A DNA stretch of 64,000 nucleotides from Schmidtea polychroa. Taxonomy: Eukaryota. Where the stretch lies: assembly GCA_044892525.1 (NCBI GenBank), contig CM097885.1, positions 47,988,001 through 48,052,000 on the forward strand. The letters are read 5' to 3'. Below, in pieces: positions 14,247 to 30,000 of this stretch. A model generated the notes under the pieces. The model searched no databases and was not told where the DNA came from. It saw only the letters and a list, made by a program, of their open reading frames with translations. Position 1 is the first letter of the stretch, and every line of letters begins with the position of its first letter. A program made the translations under genes and the position numbers.

Positions 14247-17200
14247 AGCATATATATACTTGTCGTTCTTATGTTAAAATATACTATTCCTGTTGATTTT
14301 CTTTAGCACCTAGTTGCTTAAAAAATTATTTTGAATGATATCGAACACAATCATTTTATAGTCAGGGTTTTTTTTGGTGAAAACATTTATTTCCTTGACC
14401 AAGTTAGAATCTTATAATAATGTTATCCAACATAACAAAATTTTCAACACACAAGAAAGTTGTTACAAATTTTATAAAATTTATTGATTTTTTTATTATA
14501 AAAAATGTTATCCTGTGAAACTGACTATAAAAGATCGTTGATTTTTTTCTTATTTTATAGAAACTCATCTCATTATCAATAAACCTTACTATAAAAACAC
14601 ACAAACCTACCTCTATGTTAATGTTTCCTATTTCATTGAACAACATCTATAAATGAAACAAAATAATTTAATGATTTTTGGTTAATAATTTAATAATTTT
14701 GATAAATAATAATCACAGATGCCAAAACATTGTAATAAAACCTTGATATCATTTACAATATTTTGTCTAGTTAAAAAGTTGAAAACTGCTACTATTCGGC
14801 ATATAATTTGCGGTAAGTGACGCTTGACTGATTTTCATTAAACGGACACTATTTTGTTATAAAATAACTAATAAGAATTAATTATCAATTCTATTAATAA
14901 TTCTATTTGAATGACTTTTGTAAAGAATAAAATGATACCGAAAGACGGAGAATCAAATTTACATAATATGAATACAAACAGATAAAATATAAAGTCCATT
15001 CAGATGTGGTCTCTCCAGAGAAGTTGAATGCTATGCTAAATTCTGAATTACCTATCAATTGTTGGACCCCAACATGGGTCGTAAAATGTTCAAAAATCTA
15101 TGAAAGCCGGAGCGTTATCAAATCTCTGGAATATGCGATTTCTGTCAAATCAAATAAATGAAAATCTAGCCAATTGGACTGCACAATATTTTATGATTTT
15201 TTTCTATTCGTTTTATAATAAAAAATTATAAGATTTTTACTTATAAGTAAATTTTGATTGTTTTAATGGTTGCATTTTTAAAAATAAAAAATCTATTCTC
15301 CAATTTTTTTCAAGATCAGAGTTGTCATATTTGAAAACCTTTTGTCCAGAAAAAAACATACTCTTATAAGTTTGGAATTCCAACATAAATATTTTATCCT
15401 TCGAAGCACACAATAAAAGAAGAAACACATTAATAACTATATAAAATACTGTTGGCACCCAGGGATTGCCTTGCCGACTGAAATCAAGGTTAACTAGGGG
15501 CTGTATGTCAGTCCACCCTAGACGTCAAGATGAGTATGAACCTTAAGCCTTACTGCGTCCGTTACATATCCTTCTGTACGTCCCTTGTTACTATGGGCAG
15601 GTGAGCCTCGGTTCCATGATTACTCCCCATTGATGTCTTGTTAACCTTACTTTGCTACCTTTCTCTACTTGGGCATCCTATTTTATTTATTTTTACTCTA
15701 AATCAAATCATCGCACACCAAATTTAGCCAAACACAAAAGAAATTAAAAATTGAATATATTTATTAGCGGATTATTAACTATTTAAAAATTCGTGTAACA
15801 TACATTTATTTCCACCTCTAGAGTTCTTTCCTCCATTTTAATAATATCAACGGCTATAGTTCAGAAAAGTTTGTCATCTGGACAGAATTGGCAAAATGGT
15901 TCTTGTTTCAGCCTCTGTCTTCGACGGAAACACTTTTCTTAGCTTGGTTTTGATTTTCGTTTAGTAGTTGATGTTGGAGCGATATTGGTGATCTCTTTTC
16001 TCGCCGGGTGATTGGGAATTTCGCTAAATGCGATGGTGTTGCAAGTTTTGGCCATGTTTAGGTTAGAAATTCTTTGCTTCAGTTCTGTTTCTGTACACGT
16101 CGTCATCACTGCCTTGCTTTAATTATTTATCCGTAATCGTTGGACTCGATTTTCAGTAATCAGTCCATCTCTGGTCTTCGAACCAAAAATTTCTTTGGTT
16201 AGTTCCTGGACCTATAATGGCGGGAAGTATGTAACTTAGTTTTTGTCTAGCTCTGCTTATCTTTGTTGTACTTGATGTGTAAGTTTATCCGTATTGCGAG
16301 CGTTTAAGGTATAACATTTACATGTACTCAATTTGATTCTCTTGATAATTGATCGTGAAAATGGGGTAAAGACCTCTAGGGGTATAACACATCAGTTTCG
16401 GCTGAAATCTAGTTTACGGGTAAAATTTCAATCTCACTAAATCATGTAAAAGTTCCTATGTCTAAACCATATGTAAAGTAATCTCACAAGGGGTATACTG
16501 CATATGTTTAAGGCTGATGCTTTGCGATCTATGAAAAAAAATCAGACGAAATTTACGATTGTTTGAGTTTTGACAGTCATCAAGCCGGTTGGCACAATAA
16601 ATTCCTCCATTTTCAGTTAAGGTGTATTAATTATTATTTTCTCAGAATTGTGTGGTAAACTCAGGTTTTGTCTCAATGACCTTGAAGTTTATTTCAGAGA
16701 GGTTAGTATTATCTTGAGGAGCTGATAGAGCTTTTGTTTTAATTTCACAAGTTTGGAAAGGAAATATCAATCGTGAAAGAATGAAAACTTTGTAGGCCTT
16801 GAGTTTATGTCAACCATTAAATCCGGAATTCGCAATCTTGTTTACGTCACTGATATCCTTTTCAAGAATTCCATAAGAACTTTGATCATTATCATCGCCT
16901 ACTGGAACACCTAATTATTGGTAGAATTCTTTCGATAATAATTTATTGATCATTTTTCCATAAATAAAAGTTCCTTATTGATAATGGCATTCAATGAATA
17001 TATGAATATAATTTATATATAAAATAATATAAATTAAAATAAAGCGGCTTGTAGTGACACACAATTTTCACAAATTAAAATATGAATGCTAATGAAATAA
17101 CGGAAACATGAATAAATATTGGACAAATCAATTCAGCACATTTATAATTTTTCATTTCCAAAGAAATTGTGATTCCATCTTCCAATTCGAAAATTTATTT

Positions 17201-17642
17201 TAAGACCTTATGACTCGAAATCCATCGCACTTACTATAATAAAATAGATCTGCGTATTCACGTTCTAGATCTTCCAAAAATGAAGCAAATAAAGAGGAAT
17301 ATAGAAAAGTTAAAGCATTTTAAAGAAGGGGGATGTAAGGAGTTAGTATACCCCTATATAAGATTATTATGGTTAAATGGTAGAAGTGAGATCAGTTAGT
17401 AGAAATAATTATTTCTGTTAAATTTTTATATTTAAATTCTATATTAAATTATATCATATTATATTAAATTATATTAAATTAAATCAATTAAATGTATGAC
17501 TAGTAATTACATTAATATTAATAATTATCACGCCTCGGTGTTTAAATACCTAGTAAACGAGACAGTTTTGAAGTTGTTATAAAAAATAAATGCTTGAAGA
17601 AGATTTGAATTTAATTGCGTCTAACAATTAGAATTAAAATTC

Positions 17643-17695
17643 GGCTGGGTGTGGCGGTGCGCGTCTGTAACTCAACATTGTGGGAGCCGGATTTG
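17643..17695 (+). ncRNA. Partial copy (Alu 5' domain only) of the 7SL-derived element
   Basis: ggctgggtgtggcggtgcgcgtctgtaactcaacattgtgggagccggatttg, truncated after the Alu domain. Confidence 0.6.
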
Positions 17696-17815
17696 AATTA
17701 TGTTATGTTATGAATTAATTGACTTGTTAAAATATTATATTGGAATTAGCTACTGACTGTTATCAGTAGAAAGCGTATAAAATTAGTTAATTAAGCATTA
17801 TTAGAATTAGAGATC

Positions 17816-17990
17816 GGCTGGGCGTGGTGGTGCGCGTCTGTAACTCAACATCGTGGGAGCCGGATTTGGGGTTTGGTCTCGCTTTAGCCACCGGCATCCA
17901 TTTAGAACAAAGAGTTCGTGTGGAAGCTTGATACGAACTCTGAAGTTCTGTGGATGCCAGTGGCTAAAGCGAGCTATACTTAAATCTTTT
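17816..17990 (+). ncRNA. 7SL/SRP-derived Alu-like RNA or SINE-like element (175 nt, S domain absent)
   Basis: The 5' end ggctgggcgtggtggtgcgcgtctgtaactcaacatcgtgggagccgg aligns with the SRP RNA 5' end (GCCGGGCGCGGTGGCGCGTGCCTGTAGTCCCAGCTACTCGGGAGGC), including UGUNR. It is followed by a long hairpin (tcgctttagccaccggcatcca pairs with tggatgccagtggctaaagcga) and tttt. Confidence 0.7.
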
Positions 17991-18379
17991 GTAGATTATT
18001 ACAAAGATTGTTGTCAAATTTTATACAAATATTATACAAAATGAAGAATTAAACTTTTCTTTGATAGAAGGTTTTGTCTAAAATGAAAATTAATAATAAA
18101 TAGTTTTTATACATTCGTTTGTAATTAAATTTTGCAAGTTGTTTTAATATATTTTTCATAATTTTCAGTAAAATATTTATCAACATGAAACTTTTGGATT
18201 TTATCAACAAATTTTATAAAGAAATTTTCTATTAATATATCTATTATAATAATTTTAATGAAAAAAATAGAATACACAATGAAAATATTTTGCGGAGTCA
18301 CATCTACAGCTGCGATCCAATACGGTTCATGCTAACCTGATCTACAAATATCATTTCAATTTGATCAAAATAAGCTGTA

Positions 18380-18760
18380 ACTGGTAAATCATTCAATGCG
18401 CCGTGAATTTCTTTTGGAATATCTATTTCAGTTGCCAATGTAGAGCCATATGTAAGTGAACAAGATACAAAGTCTTGCATTCTTCTAGAATTTTATCAAG
18501 ATTTTCATAGACCCATTCAAAATCTCCATGAGGTAGACTTTGACTTAGAACCCAGCAATACAGGTCGTTGATATTAATAAATAATAACTCTGTATTTTCA
18601 TCCATCTTTGCACAATGTTTGTTGATAAATGTTATTATTACCCATATATAAGGCTGGAGTCATACTGCATACTCTGTTTTAATAATGATCTGATGATATA
18701 AAAATATTTTCTTCAGAAAAAGTTTATATCTTGACGAGATCATTATATTTGTAAAAGATT
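18380..18760 (-). pseudogene. Polinton PolB fragment (motif A region)
   Basis: ININDLYCWVLSQSLPHGDFEWV (cf. LDANNLYGWAMSQPLP..F.W) followed by TEIDIPKEIHGALNDLPV (cf. VDLEYPKELHD.HNDLPL). Confidence 0.65.
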
Positions 18761-20629
18761 CAAACGATCAAACAATAAAAAGCTAGAGTGTCGACTTTGT
18801 GTAGTGTTGAGGATACCTAAATAACAATTTATAAATAAATAATTAAAATTACTTGGCGAAAGATCGTCATGACAAACGGGACGATCTATGGGAACTCAGA
18901 AAAGAAAACGGAAGTAAAAAGAAATGAGAAAGAGGAATGAAACAAAAGAAATCAGACATGAAAGGAAAAACAAAGGTCAGCACTAATTAATTAGTACAAA
19001 AAGAGAAAAGGAATTTTGAAATCGGGAAAATAGAAAATTAACAATATTCTTATCTCGACAGCTTGTCAGAAATAAGAGAAACAAAACAAAAACAGGCCGG
19101 AGCCGCAAAAGAAAAAATTAGAAAATATTGCGACAGCTGTCAAAGATAACTCGGTCGCAGGGACAACTGGGAAATCATGTGGGAGAAAAAAATGTGGAAT
19201 TGAAGATAAACTGAATTGCCACAAATTGACGAAGTATAAAAGAAGGTGGCACAGCAGAAGTAAGCAGAAACTATAGAGAAGACATTTTAGAAAATTATGA
19301 GAACGTGGAAGAATTGTATTAGCCAACAGTTTCCGGAAACCATTGAGGGACCAATTTAGAAGAAAATTTGAATAAAACTGAAGCAGAGAATTAAAGAGAA
19401 AACAGAACTAAAAGGAAGCAGCAGAGTTATTTAGTTGATAATATAAAGTTAGGCGAGTAAACCAAGTCAAAAAGAGAAAACAACCAGTTAACATTACCAA
19501 TTATTACACTCAGTTGTGAGATATTCGTCAGATCAAGGTTATACGAGAGTGCTATTCCTCACCATAGTGTTGTAATAAGCACGGTATAATACTTAGCTTG
19601 TTGAGTCATTTGTATCATTGTGAAAATATTTGTGATATTCAATAAAGTTTCCAGTGTTAATTGTTATTTGTATTTGTCAAAGCCACGCTTGGAGTCAGAG
19701 TAAGAATTCTAATTTTATCACCAACTCAATAACCGAACAGTAGCATTAGCAATTTGTACTATTATGCACGTGCAAATCTATATCACCATTTTCTTATTGT
19801 AAATAAAATTATTTGACTATGGTGCTCTAACTATATTCAGAAAAATAATTTAAGGCGTACTATAGTCAGAATTTGCACTTAAAAATATTACTATGGGGAT
19901 GCGCGATAACTCATTTTGAGACAATGGGGTCACATTTATCCACTTGTATACAAATATATACACGTTTCACTGCATCAAGAAAAGCAGTCCTCCTGTTTTC
20001 TTTGTGTTAATATTAAATTTCATTTAAAATCCCGTGTAATTGCGATATGATACGTCTCGATGGCAATATCGTGATTATTTGCAGTTTATCAAAGCATTTA
20101 TTTCGATTATCTCACATGTTTGTTTACACCTATTACATTGAAATACGTACCAAACGAGTGTGGAACCTCCAAAAAAAGTTCCACATCATTAAAAAAAATT
20201 AAAATATGAATGCTAATGAAATAACGGAAACATGAATAAATATTGGACAAATCAATTCAGCACATTTATAATTTTTCATTTCCAAAGAAATTGTGATTCC
20301 ATCTACTAATTCGAAAAATTATATTAAGACCTTATGACTCGAAATCCATCGCACTTACGTATAATAGAATAGATCTGCGTATTCACGTTCTAGATCTTCC
20401 AAAAATGAAGCAAATTGTCGATGAAAACGTCTTCGTACTTGAACTAAGCGACGTAGCTACCTAGCAGCGAGGTAATAATGTTTTGCACTATTTTGGAATT
20501 ATTTGTCACTACTATATTATGTTATGAATTAATTGACTTGTTAAAATATTATATTGGAATTAGCTACTGACTGTTATCAGTAGAAAGCGTATAAAATTAG
20601 TTAATTAAGCATTATTAGAATTAGAGATC

Positions 20630-20810
20630 GGCTGGGCGTGGTGGTGCGCGTCTGTAACTCAACAACTTGGATGCAGGTTTTGGTGTTTGGTTTCACTTTT
20701 GCCACCAGCCTCCATTTAGAGAATCAAAGAGTTCTTATGGAAAGCTTGATACGAACTCTTTGAAGTTCTATGAATTCCAGTAGCCAAAGCGAGCTATACT
20801 TAAATCTTTT
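20630..20810 (+). ncRNA. Diverged copy of the 7SL-derived element
   Basis: Same 5' Alu-like head, upstream flank and 3' end; the hairpin carries many substitutions. Confidence 0.6.
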
Positions 20811-20982
20811 GTAGATTATTACTTTGTTAATATTATATAAAAGGAAGAATTATAATCTTTTGAGCATAAAGTTTTTGTATAAAATGAAAATTAATATTCA
20901 AAATTGTAAGCGCATATAAATTTTACATAGTCATAATTATTAGGGTAATTAAAATTTTCAAGAGTGAATAATTGAGCATTCC

Positions 20983-21229
20983 TAAGGTGACCAGACGTCC
21001 AGCTTTGGGCGGGACAGTCCCCATTTTTCACGATTTATCCCGCGTCAAAATGAATAAAAAATATGTCAAGAAATAAATTATTATACAATTTGTTATTTTT
21101 ATAAATTGTACTTATGTTAAAAATCAAAAAATATTACCATATTATTTTTATTCTATATGAAAATTTTTGTTGATACCCCCTTCCTTCAAAGTTGTACCGC
21201 TTTGCCCATCTAAAAATCTGGTCACGTTA
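20983..21229. mobile_element. hAT MITE
   Basis: TIRs taaggtgaccaga / tctggtcacgtta; 8-bp TSD agcattcc / ggcattcc (7/8 match). Confidence 0.8.
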
Positions 21230-21764
21230 GGCATTCCATTAAACCGAAGATTCCATTTAATTCAATATTATCCAATTAAGAGCAGTTTGTTTGTTAATCG
21301 GTTTGTTCCTGTTTCAAAGATAGGATCAATAAAATAAGATAAAAAAATTATTTGAAGGTTCAAATCTTAGTATGGGTGAGTTTTTTATTTTTTCAAAAAA
21401 TTAATTTTTTACATTTATTTTTAGTAGAATATGAATCAGCATACTTTGTTTGCTCTAAATTTAAAATTTCATAAAATTTGGTCAAGGATTTGTCATTTTA
21501 GGATATCATGATATGAAAATCCTAGTATCGCACCCGTTGTTGTTCTCGAAATACCGCAGTTGAAGATTTTTTCTTTCATTATTATTTATGAATATAATTA
21601 AAGTAAAATAATAAACTTCATGAAACTGGTTAATCAGTAGGCTAATACACTTTTTATGGTATCGTAGATCTATTAAAATTGATAAATTTCTTCTTCTTAA
21701 AATATTTTTCACTAAAAATATTTTTAAAATTTTTACCAAATTTCTAATTAATCTTTAAGAATCT

Positions 21765-23570
21765 TTAAACTTCCCCCAGCTTAAGAAATTTTTTAAGTTT
21801 TTCCACGTTTCTTTCAATCTTTTTACCATTCTCGTTTCTTAAGATATATCGTCTGTCATGCACTTTCTCGATTACTTTATATGGTCCCTCATATCTGTAC
21901 TGGCTTTTGTTGCGTGTTTCTAATTTTACTAACACATCATCTCCTACGTCAAATTTCCTCCTTGTTTGTTCTTCTTGTTCTTCCTTTACTTGTTTTTCTT
22001 TTGACCCGTACCATTTCTCCCTGCTAATCTTTTTTCCAAAAACTATCTCTGCCGGGCTTATGCCTGTCGTTTTTTGTTTGGTTGCATTTAATGTAAATTC
22101 GACTTCTGGCAGTATCTCTGCCCAATCCGTCTTCCTTCTGTCTCGTAAAGTAGCATTTATCAGTTCTCGTATTGTCCTGAATTGCCTTTCTATCTGTCCA
22201 TTTGTTTGGTGATGGTATGGACTCGAAAAACATAACTTAATATCAAGTTTCTTTGTGAATTCTCTCAACATTCCTGATCCATACGCAATTACTCTCTCCT
22301 TTCCATCTTTATCTCTTTGCGAAAGCACTGCTCCAATGGTATCAAAACTGGCATCAATATCTAAAATGAACACCTTTCTCAGATCTGGAAAGCATAGAAT
22401 CGGTGCCATTGTGACTGCTAACTTCATTCCCTCGAATACGTTATTCGTTCCTTCAGTCCATTCCAGTTTTTTGTTACTCGGACCGCTACATAATTGTTCT
22501 AACATCAATGATTTCTTTGCATACTCACTGATGAATCTTCTATAATAATTACAAATGCCTAGAAAGCTTCGAAGTTTCTTTACGCAACTTGGCTTCCCAA
22601 AGTTTTGTATAGCCTGAATCTTAGAAGGATCGGTTTTTACTCCTTCTTTACTGATTATGTGTCCTAAGAATCTGATTTCATTCTTTATTATTTGACACTT
22701 TTCTGGGTTAATCTTTAGTCTTGTTTCATCGATCGCTTTTAATACTTCACTGAGTATTGTATAATGTTTTTCTTTACTATTCGAATAAATCAGAATGTCA
22801 TCCAAATAGACCATTGCTCCATTTATTTTGCCTATTACTTTTGTCATCATTTCCTGGAACGTACCTGGTGCTACAGCGATTCCGAACGGCATTCTATTGA
22901 AACAGTATTGCCCTTTCTTTGTTAAGAATGCTGTTTTCTCTTGCGATTCTTTGTCTAACTCCACTTGTTAATATGCATTACCAAGATCGATTGAGCTAAA
23001 ATAAACGGACCCTCCTAACACATCTAACATCTCGTCTATGTTTGGCATTGGAAATGCCTGCCTCTCTGTTACTGCATTCAGCTGTCTGAAATCCAAGAAT
23101 AGCCTAATATCTTTTTTCTCTTTTTTCCATACGCAGATTAACGGCGTGTTCCATGGAGAGTTGCATTTCCGTATAATCCAGTTTTCGTACAAATTTTGTA
23201 TTGCTTCTTCAATTGTTGTTTCGAAATTCAATGGTTGACGATATGATTTTATGTTTATCGGTTCACCTCTTGTAATTATCTTATGTTTTACTAAATGCGT
23301 ACGACCCACATCCCATTTATCCGCCATAAACACGTTTCCACTGTTCGTTATTATTTCCTTTAATTTACTATCTTCATCAATCTTTAAATGTTCCAACGCT
23401 TGCGTCAATCTTTCTCCATCTTTTATTTGTCTGCCGATTTTTGCTTCAATGTTACAAATATAGTTCTTGTCTTTTTCACTAGATTCGATATCTTTCTTTT
23501 TTGTCAGCCTATATCCAAATGCTTCTTGTAATTCTACTCCAATCACCTCTGGTGTCACTTTCTCCGCCAC
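21765..23570 (-). mobile_element. Ty3/gypsy LTR retrotransposon pol remnant (RT, truncated RNase H, integrase C-terminal part), no LTRs seen
   Basis: ORFs 22968-23570 and 21765-22964 contain LDFRQLN, FNRMPFG, YLDDILIYS, DIDASFDTIGAVLSQ and SSPYHHQTNGQIER; purine tract aagctgggggaag at the 3' end. Confidence 0.92.
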
Positions 23571-23694
23571 AATGAATCTAACTTCCTTAGAAATATCTCC
23601 GATAGTTACTTTAACCTTTGTTCTTCAAATTGTCTCTATCGTACTTTTGTTTGCACATCGTAACTTATCGTCGCTTTTGAAGCAGAAGACACCA

Positions 23695-24161
23695 TATGCG
23701 AATTATTCTCACCCATTCTGAACTTCCAGAACTTAGACGATAGTCAACTTACCGCAAATGCATCAAAGCTTGCAAAAACATATGAGACAGATCTGTCAGA
23801 AGACTTACTTCACGAAATCCTTCACCTTAAAAGTATTCACAAAACAGCTTTCAGAACTGAAAGAAGTCCAATTAAACTTCTGAATGCAATTTATGACAAT
23901 AAACTGCAAGGTATATTTATTAATATCTGCCTCGCCATTAAACTGTTTTGTACCGTACCAGTTACGGTTTCTTCAGCTGAAAGATCATTCAGCAGGCTGG
24001 CAAATTCATTAAAAACATGGCAAAGAAGCACAACTAGTCAAGATCGACTCAATCATCTAGCAATTTTAAGTATCGAAAATGATTTAGCAAAGAAAGTTGA
24101 TTTTAATGATGTCATTGAAAAATTTGCATTGACAAAAGCTAGAAAATATAGTCTACTTTGA
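23695..24161 (+). pseudogene. hAT (ZMYM1-like) transposase C-terminal dimerisation fragment
   Basis: Hand translation gives ...LFCTVPVTVSSAERSFSRLANSLKTWQRSTTSQDRLNHLAILSIENDLAKKVDFNDVIEKFALTKARK..* (no start codon, so absent from the ORF track). Confidence 0.85.
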
Positions 24162-24419
24162 GATAATTTTTGATATTATTGTAAGTTTTTACCATAGTCT
24201 ATCTTTTTATAAAATGTAAAGCTAAAAACTGCAGTTTTATTTTTAATAAATTTTTAATGTTACTTTCTTGCCATCATTAAATCCGCCCTATTTTATCCTA
24301 ATTCCTGTAGAGCATCAAACGGTATATAGTTTTGAGGCCCGCCGAAAATCCTGGCATGGGGGTTCACTTTAATAAATATTTAATAAACATGAACAAAAAA
24401 ATTAACTCATATCAGACGG

Positions 24420-25640
24420 CATCGTTAACTTTATTGTTTCATTAAAAAACTAATTGTTCAGTTTCTTTAACTAAAAAACTGGTCTAATCAACTGAACGTT
24501 TGCGGGCATCTTAACTATAATAGACAATCAACTGAAGTCCAATTATGGGTCACCTTGACGGTTTCTCTTTGCCTTCCTATGTAAGTATCCTCCCAATAAT
24601 CTACCAGTGGCATAATTTCTGCGGGACTAACTTCTACCAAATGCTCGAATGCAGTACAAACATTATTTACAGGAACAAAACTTAAGGCAAGCAGCATCTT
24701 CACTGTCATTCGACATTCCTCATTGTCGTGGTACAGTTGCGATTAGTCTAAATCTTGCACTTTTCGCCAGAGACATTGGCCTAGGTGAAATAGACAACCA
24801 ACAACACATGCATTGGGAAACATGTGCTGAATTGCATTCTGTGTGGCTTTTTCAAAATCAGACATGATGCTAGCAGGATTCACGGTAGGTAAAAGTTCCA
24901 AAATCTTTTGAAAAACTCTGATATAGGTTGCTTCGGTCTTATCCTGGATGAGGCAATAAACCAACGGCACTGCCTTGTTATCTATCAAAGCATGTATTGT
25001 AAATACTCGATAGAAGATTACTGGTGCAACTCTGAAAATTCCATCCACAAACCAATGTTTATTTTGCTGTAGACGATTGATATTATCTATTATTCCGAAC
25101 ATCATCATTCTGTAAACGTCAGTCGGTCCGGAATCCCAGACGACAAAATTTTGCCCTCTTGTTGTCGTTTGAAGAGGTTCAGGAATTGCTATCTCTGCAC
25201 TGTTCTGTGGATTTGAATATGGCAGCTGATTGCGTTTTCTCTGTCTTTCTATTGCACATTGTGAAGCGACGTATACCGGCAAATAAGGTGCTACTTCCAT
25301 CTAAATATCTGCTATGGCTTGTTGTTTAATCTGTCTTTGTTTTTCCACCTCTTCCACTTTCCTTTTTCGTATAGCCGACACCACTTTTGCTGCTTCGTTT
25401 TTAGCTGGATCAGGAGCATAATTGTGTTGATGATGACAGAACAACATCGTTCAGCATTTTCATCCGTCCTCGGCAGCCATCTTTCTTGCAGCTTCTCCAT
25501 GTCGTACTTCCATCAGCATTTACTCTGTCCTTTCGATATCTATAGCCTTCGACCAATATAATAGCCTTCTCTTTCTGTGATTCCATCTTCTCCATGTTAC
25601 TTGGGTTAGAAATATTTTATATTGAAATTAATAATATTTA
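24420..25640 (-). mobile_element. Mutator-like (MULE) transposase remnant with FLYWCH-type zinc finger
   Basis: ORF 25410-25595 has EGYRYRKDR..STTWRSCKK..CRGR; ORF 24743-25300 has WFVDGIF, PLVYCLI, IMSDFE and GCLFHLGQCLWRK. Confidence 0.88.
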
Positions 25641-25804
25641 ATATTAAATATCGATAATTAATATTTCTAAATTAATAATATTCGATATTTTCAACCAATT
25701 CATATTGCTTTAGCGAACAACATGTGTTTCTTTAATTGACTGCGCTCTTATGTTGGGGTGCCGAGAAATATAACTTCTACGGAGATTAAATCTGAGATAA
25801 TTTG

Positions 25805-26070
25805 ACATTTATCAACAAACATTGTGCAAAGATGGATGAAAATACAGAGTTATTATTTATTAATATCAACGACCTGTATTGCTGGGTTCTAAGTCAAAGT
25901 CTACCTCATGGAGATTTTGAATGGGTCTATCAAAATCTTGATAAAATTCTAGAAGAATGCAAGACTTTGTATCTTGTTCACTTACATGAGGCTATACTTT
26001 TGCAACTGAAATAGATATTCCAGAAGAAATTCACGGCGCATTGAATGATTTACCAGTTACAGCTTATTTT
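25805..26070 (+). pseudogene. Second copy of the Polinton PolB motif-A fragment (inverted relative to 18380-18632)
   Basis: ORF 25802-26014 is nearly identical to ORF 18423-18605. Confidence 0.65.
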
Positions 26071-26441
26071 GATCAAATTGAAATGATATTAGTAGATCAG
26101 GTTAGCATGAACCGTATTGGATCGCAGCTGTAGATGTGACTCCGCAAAATATTTTCATTGTGTATTCTATTTTTTTCATTAAAATTATTACAATAAATAT
26201 ATTAATAAAAAATTTCTTTATAAAATTTGTTGATAAAATTCAAAAGTTTCATGTTGATAAATATTTTAGTGAAAATTATGAAAAATATATTAAAACAACT
26301 TGCAAAATTTAATTACAAACGAATGTATAAAAACCATTTATTATTAATTTTCATTTTGGACAAAACCTTCTATCAAAGAAAAGTTTAATTCTTCATTTTG
26401 TATAATATTAAAATTTGACAGCAATCTTTGTAATAATCTAT

Positions 26442-26616
26442 AAAAGATTTAAGTATAGCTCGCTTTAGCCACTGGCATCCACAGAACTTCAGAGTTCGTA
26501 TCAAGCTTCCACACGAACTCTTTGTTCTAAATGGATGCCGGTGGCTAAAGCGAAAACAAACCCCAAATCCGGCTCCCATGTTGTTGAGTTACAGACGCGC
26601 ACAGCCACACCCAGCC
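26442..26616 (-). ncRNA. Copy of the 7SL-derived element
   Basis: Reverse complement of the 175-nt unit with intact hairpin and T-run; a few substitutions in the Alu head. Confidence 0.68.
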
Positions 26617-27090
26617 GATCTCTAATTCTAATTGTTAGACACAATGAAATTCAAATCTTCTTCAAGCATTTATTTTTTATAACAACTTCAAAACTCTCTC
26701 GTTTACTAGCGTATTTAAACACCGAGGCGTGATAATTATTAATATTAATGTAATTACTAGTCATACATTTAATTGATTTAATTTAATATAATTTAATATA
26801 ATATATAATTAATATAATATAATATATAATAATATAATTTAATATAATATATAATAATATAATATTTAATATAATTTAATATAGAATTTAAATATAAAAA
26901 TGTTGATAAATATTTTACTGAAAATTATGAAAAATATATTAAAACAACTTGCAAAATTTAATTACAAACGAATGTATAAAAACTATTTATTATTAATTTT
27001 CATTTTGGATAAAACCTTCTATCAAAGAAAAGTTTAATTCTTCATTTTGTATAATATTAAAATTTGACAACAATCTTTGTAATAATCTAC

Positions 27091-27265
27091 AAAAGATTTA
27101 AGTATAGCTCGCTTTAGCCACTGGCATCCACAGAACTTCAGAGTTCGTATCAAGCTTCCACACGAACTCTTTGTTCTAAATGGATGCCGGTGGCTAAAGC
27201 GAGACCAAACCCCAAATCCGGCTCCCACGATGTTGAGTTACAGACGCGCACCGCCACGCCCAGCC
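27091..27265 (-). ncRNA. Copy of the 7SL-derived element
   Basis: Near-identical to 17816-17990 (ggcggtg versus ggtggtg) and shares its upstream flank. Confidence 0.7.
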
Positions 27266-27849
27266 GATCTCTAATTCTAATAATGCTTAATTAATTAATT
27301 TTATACGCTTTCTACTGATAACAGTCAGTAGCTAATTCCAATATAATATTTTAACAAGTCAATTACCAATATTTAGGTGTTCCAGTAGGCGATGATAATG
27401 ATCAAAGTTCTTATGGAATTCTTGAAAAGGATATCAGTGACGTAAACAAGATTGTGAATTCCGGATTTAATGGTTGACATAAACTCAAGGCCTACAAAGT
27501 TTTCATTCTATCACGATTGATATTTCCTTTCCAAACTTGTGAAATTAAAACAAAAGCTCTATCAGCTCCTCAAGATAATGCTAACCTCTCTGAAATAAAC
27601 TTCAAGGTCATTGAGACAAAACCTGAGTTTACCACACAATTCTGAGAAAATAATAATTAATACACCTTAACTGAATGTGGAGGAATTTATTGTGCCAACC
27701 GGCTTGACTATCAAAACTCAAACAATCGTAAATTTCGTTTGATTTTTTTTCATAGATCGCAAAGCATCAGCCTTAAACATATGCAGTATACCCTTTGTGA
27801 GATTACTTTATATATGGTTTAGACATAGGAATTTTTACATGATTTAGTG

Positions 27850-30000
27850 CAGTGGTTCGCAAATTTATTTTACTGCTGGCACCCAAAAATAATGTATTGA
27901 AACTCACGGCACCCTGCATCTTCTCATCTCCCATGTATAAGTAAAGATATGTATTTATATATTAAAACAACATTTATACACAAGCGAGTTTTATATTTTC
28001 GTAACAAAATTTTATTAATAAATATGTATACCAGAGATATATCATCACATTTAGATAAACATACGACCAATTATTGCAAAGTTACATATAATACGCTTAA
28101 TCAATTCAATAGGAAACATGAGACTGGTGTGATGCGCATATTTTTTTAATGCCAGGGCCAATTTGAGATAGGCATACTCTCATTTCATCTTCGACTGCCT
28201 TGAGTCTTTCTCTTTTTTTTACTTTTGATGTTCACCAAAGCAGAAAAGCGAAGCTCGCACAAATATGAAGTTGAGAATTGTAGGAGTATTTTGAGCGCTC
28301 GTAGTCCTATATTCGGATATTCTTTTTTAATCTCAATCCAAAAAAAGTTGAGGTCTAATTCTTCATATCTTAGTTTCAGTGTTCGATCATTTCGAATATT
28401 CATCATTTCCTCCTCTTCTATAAGTTCCAAATCATTTTTTCCATCACTGATGCCACAAATGGATTTCTTATCCAATCTTAATGATCTACATTGATATCGG
28501 AAAAATAATTATCAACTTTAGTCACTAAAGTTGTTAAATTCTCAATAATGAGTTCTCGAATTTGGTTATTCTCCATTTCCTCGATTTTTGAGAACATTCC
28601 CATATTACCCTGGCTTACTTTCTTTATCCACAACTTCAATTTGTCTTTGAAAGCCATTATTTTGTCTGAAGAAGGTAAGAATTTTTAATTTCTTCCCTGC
28701 ATACTGAAGTTTAATTTATTCACTAGTTCAAAATTATCTGCCAAATAAGTCAACCTTGAATGCCACGCAACGTCCTGTAATAATTCGCAATATTCGTTTT
28801 GCTTTTCTTCTTCAAAAAATATGATTAATTCTGCTTTTTAATCATAAAAAAGACTCAAAACACGCCCTTTAAAAGCCATCTTACTTCTGTGTGAAGAATA
28901 AGATTTTTAAATTGAGATACCATTTCTTCGTAAAGTTTATTAAATAAACGTGACTTCAGAGGTTTACTTTTAACGTAATTGACCATCTTGACTACCATGT
29001 TCAAGACACATTCTAAGTCTATATTTATGGATTTTGCTACTAAAGCTTCACGGTGTATAAAACAATGTGTTGATACGATATTCATGTTCTTTTTTTAGCA
29101 AGAGACACAAAGCCCTTTATGGAACCGATCATAGATGGTGCACCATCCGTACATATGCCAACACATGTTTCCCAAGATATGCCAGCTGATGATAAATACT
29201 GATCTAAAATATTAAAAACATCTGCTTCAGTAGTTGTTCTTTCTAATTCTTTGCAATATAAAAATTCTTCAATTATTTTTTCATCGCTATCAATAAATCG
29301 CGTGTACACTAATAACTGAGCTTTTCCTCCAATGCCAGTACTTTCTTCAACTTGCAAAGCATACATATTAGCTTCTTTCATTTTCAAAACATTTTATTCT
29401 ATGTTATCAGACATTTCATTAATACGTCTTCGTACTGTGTCATCTGATAATGGAATTTTCTTTATGCCAGCTTCACTTGCTTCTCCGAGCACTACCTTTA
29501 CAATTGCTAAACATGACGGTAAAATTAATGTCTCTCCAATTGTGTGTGGTTTCATTTGTTGTGATATTATTTCTGCGACTATGTAGCTGGCCTCTTTAAC
29601 ACGATCAGAAATTTTGAATTGTTTTGTAAAATTACTGCTTTGTTTTTGATGTGAATAAAGCAGTCTTTTAAAATATTCCACATTTTTTGAGAAAGATGAG
29701 CATGTTTCGTCGAAAAATGGCGCAAAAGTTTACTAGGCACCATAGCTGCATTAGCAGTACTTCGCCACATACAACACATTTCGGATTAGGAGATATTTTG
29801 TCAGCACACCAAGTAAACCCGTATTCCAAATAGTTTTTTTGGTATAGACGGGTCTTACTCTTACATGCTTTTTCCTTAGTTAGAGCTTTATTTTCATTTG
29901 TATCACCAGAATTTGCGTCAATTGTACTGGGTTGCAAATATGAATTCTCGTCTATACTCCTCCTTCTTCCAATAAATTTGTCCATTTTCTAGAATCCCAA
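27850..30000 (-). mobile_element. Buster/Charlie-type hAT (SCAND3/ZBED5-like) element, pseudogenised
   Basis: Terminus cagtggttcgcaaa at 27850. ORF fragments contain KPHTIGETLILP, IPLSDDTVRRRI, CTDGAPSM, THCFIHREAL, HTEVRWL and FSTSYLCE..FSAL. Confidence 0.9.

Follow-up and report, generated by a model that had tools for sequence, protein, structure and literature searches.

A probable single-locus small-RNA gene family derived from 7SL without the S domain in the planarian Schmidtea polychroa

SINEs of the SINE1 type, which arose from 7SL RNA, have been reported only from supraprimates, hagfish and one shrew mole (PMC7245038, PMC13023118). The window analysed here, a 64,000-nt stretch of the Schmidtea polychroa genome (GCA_044892525.1, contig CM097885.1, positions 47,988,001 to 48,052,000, forward strand), carries a 175-nt unit for which an initial annotation, made from the sequence alone, proposed an origin from 7SL by loss of the S domain. 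This raises the question of what such a unit is in a flatworm: a SINE1-like element, an RNA polymerase III (Pol III) small-RNA gene, or a relic.

The unit is a 7SL derivative without the S domain. The best copy (c1, Table 1) aligns globally with Rfam Metazoa_SRP (RF00017) over model positions 1-299, with an E-value of about 5e-8 when rescaled to the whole 781-Mb genome. More specifically, its first ~50 nt match the Alu 5' domain of SRP RNA, including UGUAA, and ~129 S-domain model positions (helices 6 and 8, with the SRP19/SRP54 sites) are replaced by a 12-nt apex, which bears out the proposed ancestry as well as the absence of helix 6/8 motifs. All copies score below the RF00017 gathering score of 70 bits because the S domain is absent. 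The suggested likeness of the hairpin base to SRP helix 5 stands only in part: the basal pairs of the stem do form between tcgctttagcca and ggctaaagcgag, and the covariance model assigns both to helix 5, but alignment posteriors are low there. Local alignments of the arms with the host 7SL body are no better than shuffles (p ~0.08 to ~0.9 by piece), and the stem as a recognisable remnant of host helix 5 is not borne out.

The host's own full-length 7SL (L001:1500-1799; 240.9 bits against RF00017) lies in a tandem array with a 593-bp repeat at 31.93-32.02 Mb of another chromosome-scale contig (C2). It shares with the unit a homologous head (35/48 positions identical, same pairs), a 3' end that pairs just after the head, a terminal T-run and an AT-rich box near -30. 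The unit differs by lacking helices 6 and 8 and by a head that is 27% diverged; similarity is undetectable past about nt 60, and the upstream sequence is different. Divergence of the head has preserved its structure: eight of the 13 differing positions are paired, yet 14/14 base pairs are kept, with three compensatory double changes, each in a different helix. When 13 random substitutions are placed in the head, all pairs survive in 5e-4 of trials. These compensatory changes may date from an ancestor that was still a full-length 7SL paralogue.

The remainder of the unit folds into the rod-like hairpin described previously, with apex GGAAGCTTG and a closing TTTT; the minimum free energy (MFE) of c1 compares with -51.5 +/- 3.9 kcal/mol for shuffles (z -10.3). 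Its stem is much more regular than a true helix 5, and the unit has 50% G+C against ~30% in its surroundings. Both c1 and c4 contain all 14 pairs of the Alu domain (helices 2-4), UGUAA and the G14/G15 and C34/C37 loop-loop contacts, and their sole T4 run is at the 3' end.

Table 1. Features of the locus, in window coordinates (scores against RF00017; MFE in kcal/mol).
Feature	Position	Strand	Score or basis
c1, intact 175-nt Alu-like 7SL-derived RNA gene	17816-17990	+	58.3 bits, E 2.6e-14; MFE -91.8
c1 Alu 5' domain	17816-17862	+	
c1 long stem	17862-17987	+	
c1 apex loop GGAAGCTTG	17922-17930	+	
c1 UGUAA turn	17839-17843	+	
c1 Pol III-type terminator TTTT, also the RNA 3' end observed	17987-17990	+	X21 contigs (RNA label a guess)
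c4, intact copy	27091-27265	-	56.6 bits; MFE -91.8
c3, full length, probably impaired	26442-26616	-	52.8 bits; MFE -82.5
c2, decayed pseudogene copy	20630-20810	+	29.5 bits; MFE -52
Head-only copy, in which 53 nt of Alu 5' domain abut the c1 upstream flank	17643-17695	+	26.7 bits
TATA-like TTAATTAA, -29/-22 of c1	17787-17794	+	Read from sequence
Left arm of local inverted segmental duplication, carrying head-only copy and c1	16435-18651		
Right arm of inverted duplication, with c4 and c3 in 649-bp tandem	25786-27849		
High-copy repeat inserted 16 nt upstream of head, c3/head-only lineage	17287-17626		X2 depth, upstream alignment

The five copies originally listed are all present at their positions and strands, and c2 is diverged as stated. 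Five heads exist, but the count of five copies was too generous, as only c1 and c4 look intact while c3, c2 and the head-only copy look to be dying. A single mismatch in 175 nt, at a loop nucleotide, separates c4 from c1, and their 100-nt upstream flanks are identical; being about 1% apart, the two are effectively one recent lineage. Copy c3 differs from c1 by seven changes, all within nt 1-63 and one of them at a loop G, has gained an internal TTTT at nt 61-64, and has upstream a high-copy repeat that ends at -17 and pushes away the TATA-like box. Because of this premature T4, and because the deficit of changes is marginal (0 observed against 3 expected), the invariant stem of c3 is not taken as a sign of selection. 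Over nt 36-175, c2 is 14.3% diverged from c1. Its 17 substitutions that break stem or head pairs account for all the pair-breaking c1/c2 differences, the c1 stem being intact; at least 16 pairs are lost and two internal T4 runs are new. The possibility that c2 is an ancestral, less perfect form is ruled out by its lower RF00017 score and these new T4 runs. Its first 35 nt are identical to those of c1, as are the 117 nt upstream except for one mismatch, which marks a conversion tract. The head-only copy is a deletion product, with no T4 before 17987.

Searches of the 781-Mb genome by BLAST, a custom covariance model and 21-mers with two mismatches allowed found no unit outside the five local heads; the BLAST search for copy number proposed by the initial annotation thus yields a single locus, with full-length 7SL on another contig. 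Nothing in the unit with its near flanks (17699 to about 18375) recurs away from the locus, and exact-pattern scans of public metagenomes found no relatives. Scans for tRNAs and for bacterial promoters and terminators gave nothing useful. The copies have upstream and downstream flanks in common and lie within larger segmental duplications, the two inverted arms being 96-99% identical. In the DNA run X2, depth on the unit is about 750, equal to that of its flanks (single-copy level), compared with 0.45-1.4 million on the repeat at 17287-17626. Within the arms, repeats are confined to a reverse-transcriptase fragment at 16555-16923, in the outer part, and to the distal 3' flank. No target-site duplication is present at the arm ends 16435 and 27849, which, together with the uniqueness of the unit and its near flanks, rules out that the unit is a terminal inverted repeat or belongs to a multi-copy transposon. 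There is likewise no flanking direct repeat around the unit itself and no A-rich or LINE-derived tail, the DNA past TTTT reading GTAGATTATTAC. The unit has spread by local tandem and inverted DNA duplication and not by retroposition.

Elements compatible with Pol III transcription surround and enter the unit. The TATA-like box TTAATTAA of c1 also occurs upstream of c4 and c2, TATAAAA is found at 17776-17782 upstream of c1, and the AT boxes of the host 7SL and U6 genes lie at about -31 and -28. GAGTTCG at 17913-17919 resembles a box B by sequence; no PSE-like motif common to U6 and 7SL genes was found upstream of the unit. In run X21, the sole RNA-like run, although its RNA label is a guess, k-mer depth is high on the unit and contigs cover only 17804-18004, with zero on both flanks. 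These contigs carry untemplated A-runs directly after 17989/17990, where the genome continues GTAGATT. This single run, guessed to be RNA, is evidence that the unit yields a discrete transcript ending at the T-run and, with the Pol III-type terminator, favours the Pol III RNA option of the initial annotation. The published planarian 7SL northern probe corresponds to the S domain and is blind to the RNA of the unit.

We consider that the unit is a single-locus family of Pol III small-RNA genes, derived from 7SL through S-domain loss and probably forming an Alu-type particle with SRP9/14, and give this reading a probability of roughly 55%. The predicted RNA would comprise a full Alu 5' domain (helices 2-4 with UGUAA and both loop-loop G-C contacts), a ~55-bp near-perfect stem in the place of helix 5, and a UUUU end. 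Transcription by Pol III would start at G17816, directed by the TATA-like box at -29/-22 and 7SL-type internal elements. The family grew by DNA-level duplication, as small-RNA genes of the same genome do, 7SL and U6 both being tandem arrays. The scAlu and BC200 RNAs form free Alu-domain particles with SRP9/14, whose binding determinants are the U-turn and loop-loop G-C pairs of the Alu 5' domain. To judge from its sequence, the planarian RNA shares these determinants and lacks the S domain, and its head may bind the SRP9/14 heterodimer in a free Alu-type particle devoid of SRP19/54/68/72. It differs from scAlu and BC200 in their descent from retroposed Alu monomers and in their A-rich regions. 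Possible roles of such a particle are to titrate SRP9/14 or to act on ribosomes, and the long duplex would stabilise the RNA and may serve as an ADAR or Dicer substrate. A six-frame Pfam search of the genome for SRP9/SRP14 genes gave no hit, such a search being uninformative for small intron-split genes; SRP9 is present in Schmidtea mediterranea, with an RNAi phenotype (PMC12579931).

It is possible, if somewhat unlikely, that the RNA is a transcribed but functionless by-product: an S-domain-less 7SL copy that kept its Pol III signals, spread as a passenger of local segmental duplications in a region full of repeats, and is now in slow decay. Transposon fragments do surround the locus, three of the five copies are visibly impaired, and 7SL deletion derivatives arise readily in this genome, the true array containing at least 15 head-only units. 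Furthermore, c1 and c2 have diverged to the same extent in the unit (14.3%) as in the 3' flank (14.4%). A decaying by-product sits poorly, however, with the structure-preserving divergence of the head (P about 5e-4), with an intact c1/c4 stem beside the pairs lost in the old copy c2, with the absence of internal T4 from c1 and c4, and with the high k-mer depth in X21.

Alternatively, the hairpin might be the working part, the 7SL-type Pol III promoter and head driving a ~46-bp near-perfect duplex that feeds small RNAs or edited dsRNA; we regard this as improbable. It would fit the regularity of the stem and the identity of nt 64-175 among c1, c3 and c4, all seven c1-c3 differences lying outside that interval, but the c3 stem lies behind the premature T4 and its invariance cannot reflect selection on c3. 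At 17886, a paired position in a UAG context resembling a favoured ADAR site, an X21 contig reads G against the genomic A, although this could be a strain difference. X21 contigs of at least 81 nt span the stem, with coverage extending to head and terminator, which fits a full-length RNA, and Rfam miRNA-family matches (mir-4662, MIR6140) reach 27-30 bits against cut-offs of 97-140.

The likeness to SINE1 elements (Alu, B1, tree shrew Tu, hagfish SINE1 and shrew-mole Urop) lies in the deleted central S domain, the retained Alu 5' domain and the joining of the 7SL 5' and 3' ends via a helix-5-like stem (PMC7245038, PMC13023118). The planarian unit differs in having a longer, near-perfect stem and a deletion of about 129 nt by Rfam alignment, against ~183 nt (PMC13023118), and in being neither dispersed nor associated with a LINE. 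A SINE1-type retroposon, or the master copy of one, as an invertebrate equivalent of Alu/B1 is most improbable and, for the present genome, largely refuted: shared ancestry, A-tailed transcripts in X21 and a preprint repeat annotation in which SINE/7SL is expanded in Dugesia, a related genus, speak for it, but there are zero copies beyond the locus, flanks are common on both sides, A-rich tails and target-site duplications are missing from the DNA, depth in a DNA run is at single-copy level, and the same preprint calls SINE/7SL seemingly absent in Schmidtea (bioRxiv 10.64898/2025.12.11.693146). The Dugesia class is an annotated class of 7SL-related repeats.

For the favoured reading, a small-RNA gene family, the closest analogue is by comparison the rodent 4.5SH RNA. 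Like 4.5SH, which comes from 7SL through B1, the planarian RNA would be a small Pol III RNA from 7SL, encoded by genes and not retroposons, and both have multiplied at the DNA level, 4.5SH within longer repeat units (PMC7279448). The 4.5SH genes require a TATA-like box at -31/-24 besides internal boxes (PMC10137851); the planarian TATA-like box lies at -29/-22. The 4.5SH genes differ in encoding ~94 nt and in numbering hundreds, in tandem units of 4-5 kb, compared with two intact 175-nt copies, inverted or in 649-bp tandem, and in deriving from a SINE, whereas the planarian unit, in a flatworm and of independent origin, shows no SINE stage.

In its fullest form, which we offer tentatively and hold to be rather unlikely as a whole, a functional and non-mobile Alu-type RNA would have arisen independently in a flatworm: a Pol III transcript recruiting SRP9/14 without the rest of SRP, with an ADAR-editable duplex arm, and affecting either translation or the balance of 7SL and SRP9/14. 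A gene of this type might also be what the Dugesia SINE/7SL repeats came from. As a 7SL-derived RNA gene, 4.5SH has been reported only from mouse-like rodents. An expressed S-domain-less 7SL derivative in a lophotrochozoan would mean that the same deletion route recurs far outside vertebrates, and that it can give a stable gene without ever turning into a SINE. Planarians are readily treated by RNAi, their SRP9 phenotype is characterised and they are known to be sensitive to excess 7SL (PMC12579931), so that a role for a free Alu-type particle outside mammals would be directly testable in them.

Scanned against Rfam, the whole window holds no family at or above its own gathering score; at a relaxed threshold the copies of the unit match the signal recognition particle RNA model Metazoa_SRP (RF00017). 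More specifically, copy c1 covers model positions 1-299 with 58.3 bits (E 2.6e-14), its nt 1-47 are aligned at full posterior probability, and about 129 S-domain positions of the model are represented by 12 nt. Scores for the other copies are 56.6 (c4), 52.8 (c3), 29.5 (c2) and 26.7 bits (head-only copy). The minimum free energy of c1 is -91.8 kcal/mol compared to -51.5 +/- 3.9 kcal/mol in shuffles, and the fold consists of an Alu 5' domain and a single long stem. The initial annotation had described a 7SL head without S domain, recognizable in its first 50 nt or so and followed by a rod-like hairpin, in four units of 175 nt and a head-only copy. All five positions are confirmed and this reading of the unit is right.

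Coordinates of the unit copies and of the duplicated and transposon-derived segments around them
Feature	Position	Strand	Description
c1	17816-17990	+	full 175-nt unit
c2	20630-20810	+	unit copy
c3	26442-26616	-	unit copy
c4	27091-27265	-	unit copy
Head-only copy	17643-17695		53-nt head alone
Left inverted arm	16435-18651
Right inverted arm	25786-27849		holds 649-bp tandem pair
Third segment	~20177-20901		repeats c1 surroundings
Transposon fragments	21765-23570, 24743-25300, 28185-29985		LTR-retrotransposon pol (RT/RNase H), MULE transposase, hAT-like transposase

The copies are in very different condition. Copies c1 and c4 differ by a single loop nucleotide and have identical folds; in both, the only T4 run is the 3' end, and the unit is 50% G+C in a region of about 30% G+C. 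Seven nucleotides of copy c3 differ from c1, all inside nt 1-63; one change removes the loop G of a tertiary contact and two give rise to a TTTT within the unit, at nt 61-64. Upstream, a high-copy repeat ends 16 nt before the head and the AT box is displaced. Copy c2 has one mismatch to c1 in the upstream 117 nt and none in the first 35 nt, beyond which it is 14.3% diverged, much like its 3' flank (14.4%). Because identity switches sharply, from one mismatch in about 150 nt (20513-20664 against 17699-17850 of c1) to about 14% divergence, c2 looks like an old pseudogene whose promoter and first 35 nt were recently gene-converted. Its fold reaches only -52 kcal/mol and it has two new T4 runs. 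The head-only copy is a deletion product fused to the c1 upstream flank, and from its start no T4 occurs until the c1 terminator (17643-17990). A transcript begun there would be a 348-nt dimer of head, linker and full unit, recalling dimeric Alu. Based on these differences, T4 runs, repeat insertion and deletion, the family appears to comprise two intact genes (c1 and c4) and three casualties (c2, c3 and the head-only copy).

Upstream, TTAATTAA is found in the sequence at -29/-22 of c1, c4 and c2. The AT boxes of host genes lie at about -31 (7SL) and -28 (U6), and rodent 7SL-derived 4.5SH genes require a TATA-like box at -31/-24 besides internal boxes (PMC10137851). Transcript evidence comes from X21, a public run with the same species label whose RNA nature is our guess and whose data are contigs. 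Within 17000-18741, X21 contigs are confined to 17804-18004 with zero depth on both flanks, depth climbs toward the 3' end of the unit, and three contigs carry untemplated A-runs right after 17989/17990, inside the terminal T-run. A discrete transcript with its end at a Pol III terminator would produce this pattern if the library were 3'-anchored or A-tailed; the contigs themselves carry no 5' end, strand or level. No X21 reads were seen in the linker between the head-only copy and c1, and the unit is absent from two other RNA-like runs. At 17886, the assembly and the public DNA run X2 read A and one X21 contig reads G. The A, a paired base of the long stem flanked as UAG, resembles a favoured ADAR site, and the difference may reflect A-to-I editing or, equally possibly, a strain difference. 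Our main reading, to which we give a probability of about 0.55, is that the unit is an expressed Pol III small-RNA gene, likely forming a predicted SRP9/14 Alu-type particle.

Over 48 head positions, c1 shows 13 differences from the canonical 7SL RNA of the same genome; eight fall at paired positions, and all 14 pairs survive. Helices 2, 3 and 4 each contain one compensatory double change (C-G to U-A, A-U to G-C and U-A to C-G, respectively), two further changes are wobble-compatible, and c1 retains both the UGUAA turn and the loop contacts of G14/G15 and C34/C37. In simulation, 13 random substitutions leave all head pairs intact with a frequency of 5e-4. It is possible that the compensatory changes arose before the S domain was lost. 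Between c1 and c2, 21 differing sites fall at c1-paired positions, with 17 unpaired in c2, four still pairing and no case of the reverse. Since the breaks are all in c2, the c1 lineage kept its stem during the time in which c2 lost at least 16 pairs. The c1/c4 pair is just ~1% diverged, which limits the weight of the constraint evidence that it offers, and a transcribed yet functionless 7SL deletion derivative is possible, though we consider it rather unlikely.

The stem arms had been likened to the two strands of SRP helix 5. RF00017 does place them in helix 5, with low posteriors and mainly via pairing over letters; resemblance to the host RNA did not hold up, local alignments of the arms to the host 7SL body being no better than shuffles. 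A few strings, GAGTTCG, CTGTGGATGCCAGTG and AGCGAG, recall conserved 7SL motifs, possibly by chance. A helix-5 stump would be the economical reading, and an unrelated palindrome is possible. A function centred on the hairpin seems improbable to us.

The host's full-length 7SL gene is present as well, scoring 240.9 bits, in a tandem array of 593-bp period and well over a hundred copies on the large contig C2. The U6 snRNA genes likewise stand in tandem, as at least 47 identical copies of a 793-bp unit (G000:C2:142937490-142983946), and small-RNA genes of this genome seem usually to be arranged in this way. A 53-nt Schmidtea mediterranea 7SL northern probe printed in Table S1 of PMC12579931 matches the host 7SL exactly, which marks the genome as that of S. 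mediterranea or a very close relative. The probe matches nothing in the window; because it lies in the S domain, it is blind to RNA of the Alu-like unit. The 7SL array also contains extra 254-bp units, one of them at L036:1500-1605 (G000:C2:31989184 onward) and no fewer than 14 others within C2:31.979-32.000 Mb, in which nt 1-56 of 7SL are joined to spacer at an ATGAA microhomology and the unit continues to a T9 run. Their upstream region is still that of normal 7SL, so a head-only (scAlu-like) RNA of ~100 nt could be made from them, which would be a second type of S-domain-less 7SL derivative here.

The searched assembly comprises 781 Mb, with the window on a 271.6-Mb contig and matches mostly on four very large contigs. 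Over all 781 Mb, BLAST with the unit and a unit-specific 21-mer with two mismatches permitted each return the five local copies only, and a covariance model trained on the four full-length copies adds weak matches to the true 7SL array. The genome-wide copy number asked for by the initial annotation is thus five, and its option of a SINE1-like element fails for this genome. The copies sit within larger duplications, sharing 100 nt or more of upstream flank (c1, c4 and c2) and a downstream flank (all copies); the DNA 3' of TTTT is GTAGATTATTAC, with neither an A-rich tail nor a flanking direct repeat at the unit; and X2 depth on the unit equals that of the flanks (~750), compared to 0.45-2.8 million on adjoining high-copy repeats. 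We therefore regard a SINE as very improbable. The two very high-copy repeats flanking the unit lie at 17287-17626 and 18805-18931; other copies or transcripts of the second finish in A-runs at 18924, and it may be a SINE or LINE 3' end. We reject the possibility that the unit is the terminal repeat, or the cargo, of a multi-copy transposon: although transposon debris lies next to the arms and between them, neither the unit nor its near flanks recur outside this locus, and no target-site duplication marks the ends of the arms. The outer part of the duplicated arms (16555-16923) has 75% identity to a retroelement's reverse-transcriptase ORF; the retroelement occurs on the same contig (L075, G000:C1:203875000-203884999) in 8-9-kb tandem units, each carrying a three-tRNA-gene mini-array of 359-bp period.

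7SL-derived SINEs are reported from supraprimates, hagfish and a shrew mole only (PMC7245038, PMC13023118), and a preprint repeat annotation describes a SINE/7SL expansion in Dugesia that is seemingly absent in Schmidtea (bioRxiv 10.64898/2025.12.11.693146). The rodent 4.5SH gene was multiplied as DNA inside longer repeats (PMC7279448). Like 4.5SH, the planarian family derives from 7SL, has multiplied at the DNA level, as a gene, along with larger repeat units and carries candidate Pol III signals in its sequence; unlike 4.5SH, it belongs to a flatworm, where it arose independently, and has two intact copies only and a long duplex arm. The planarian family follows the 4.5SH gene pattern in the three shared respects and does not qualify as a SINE.
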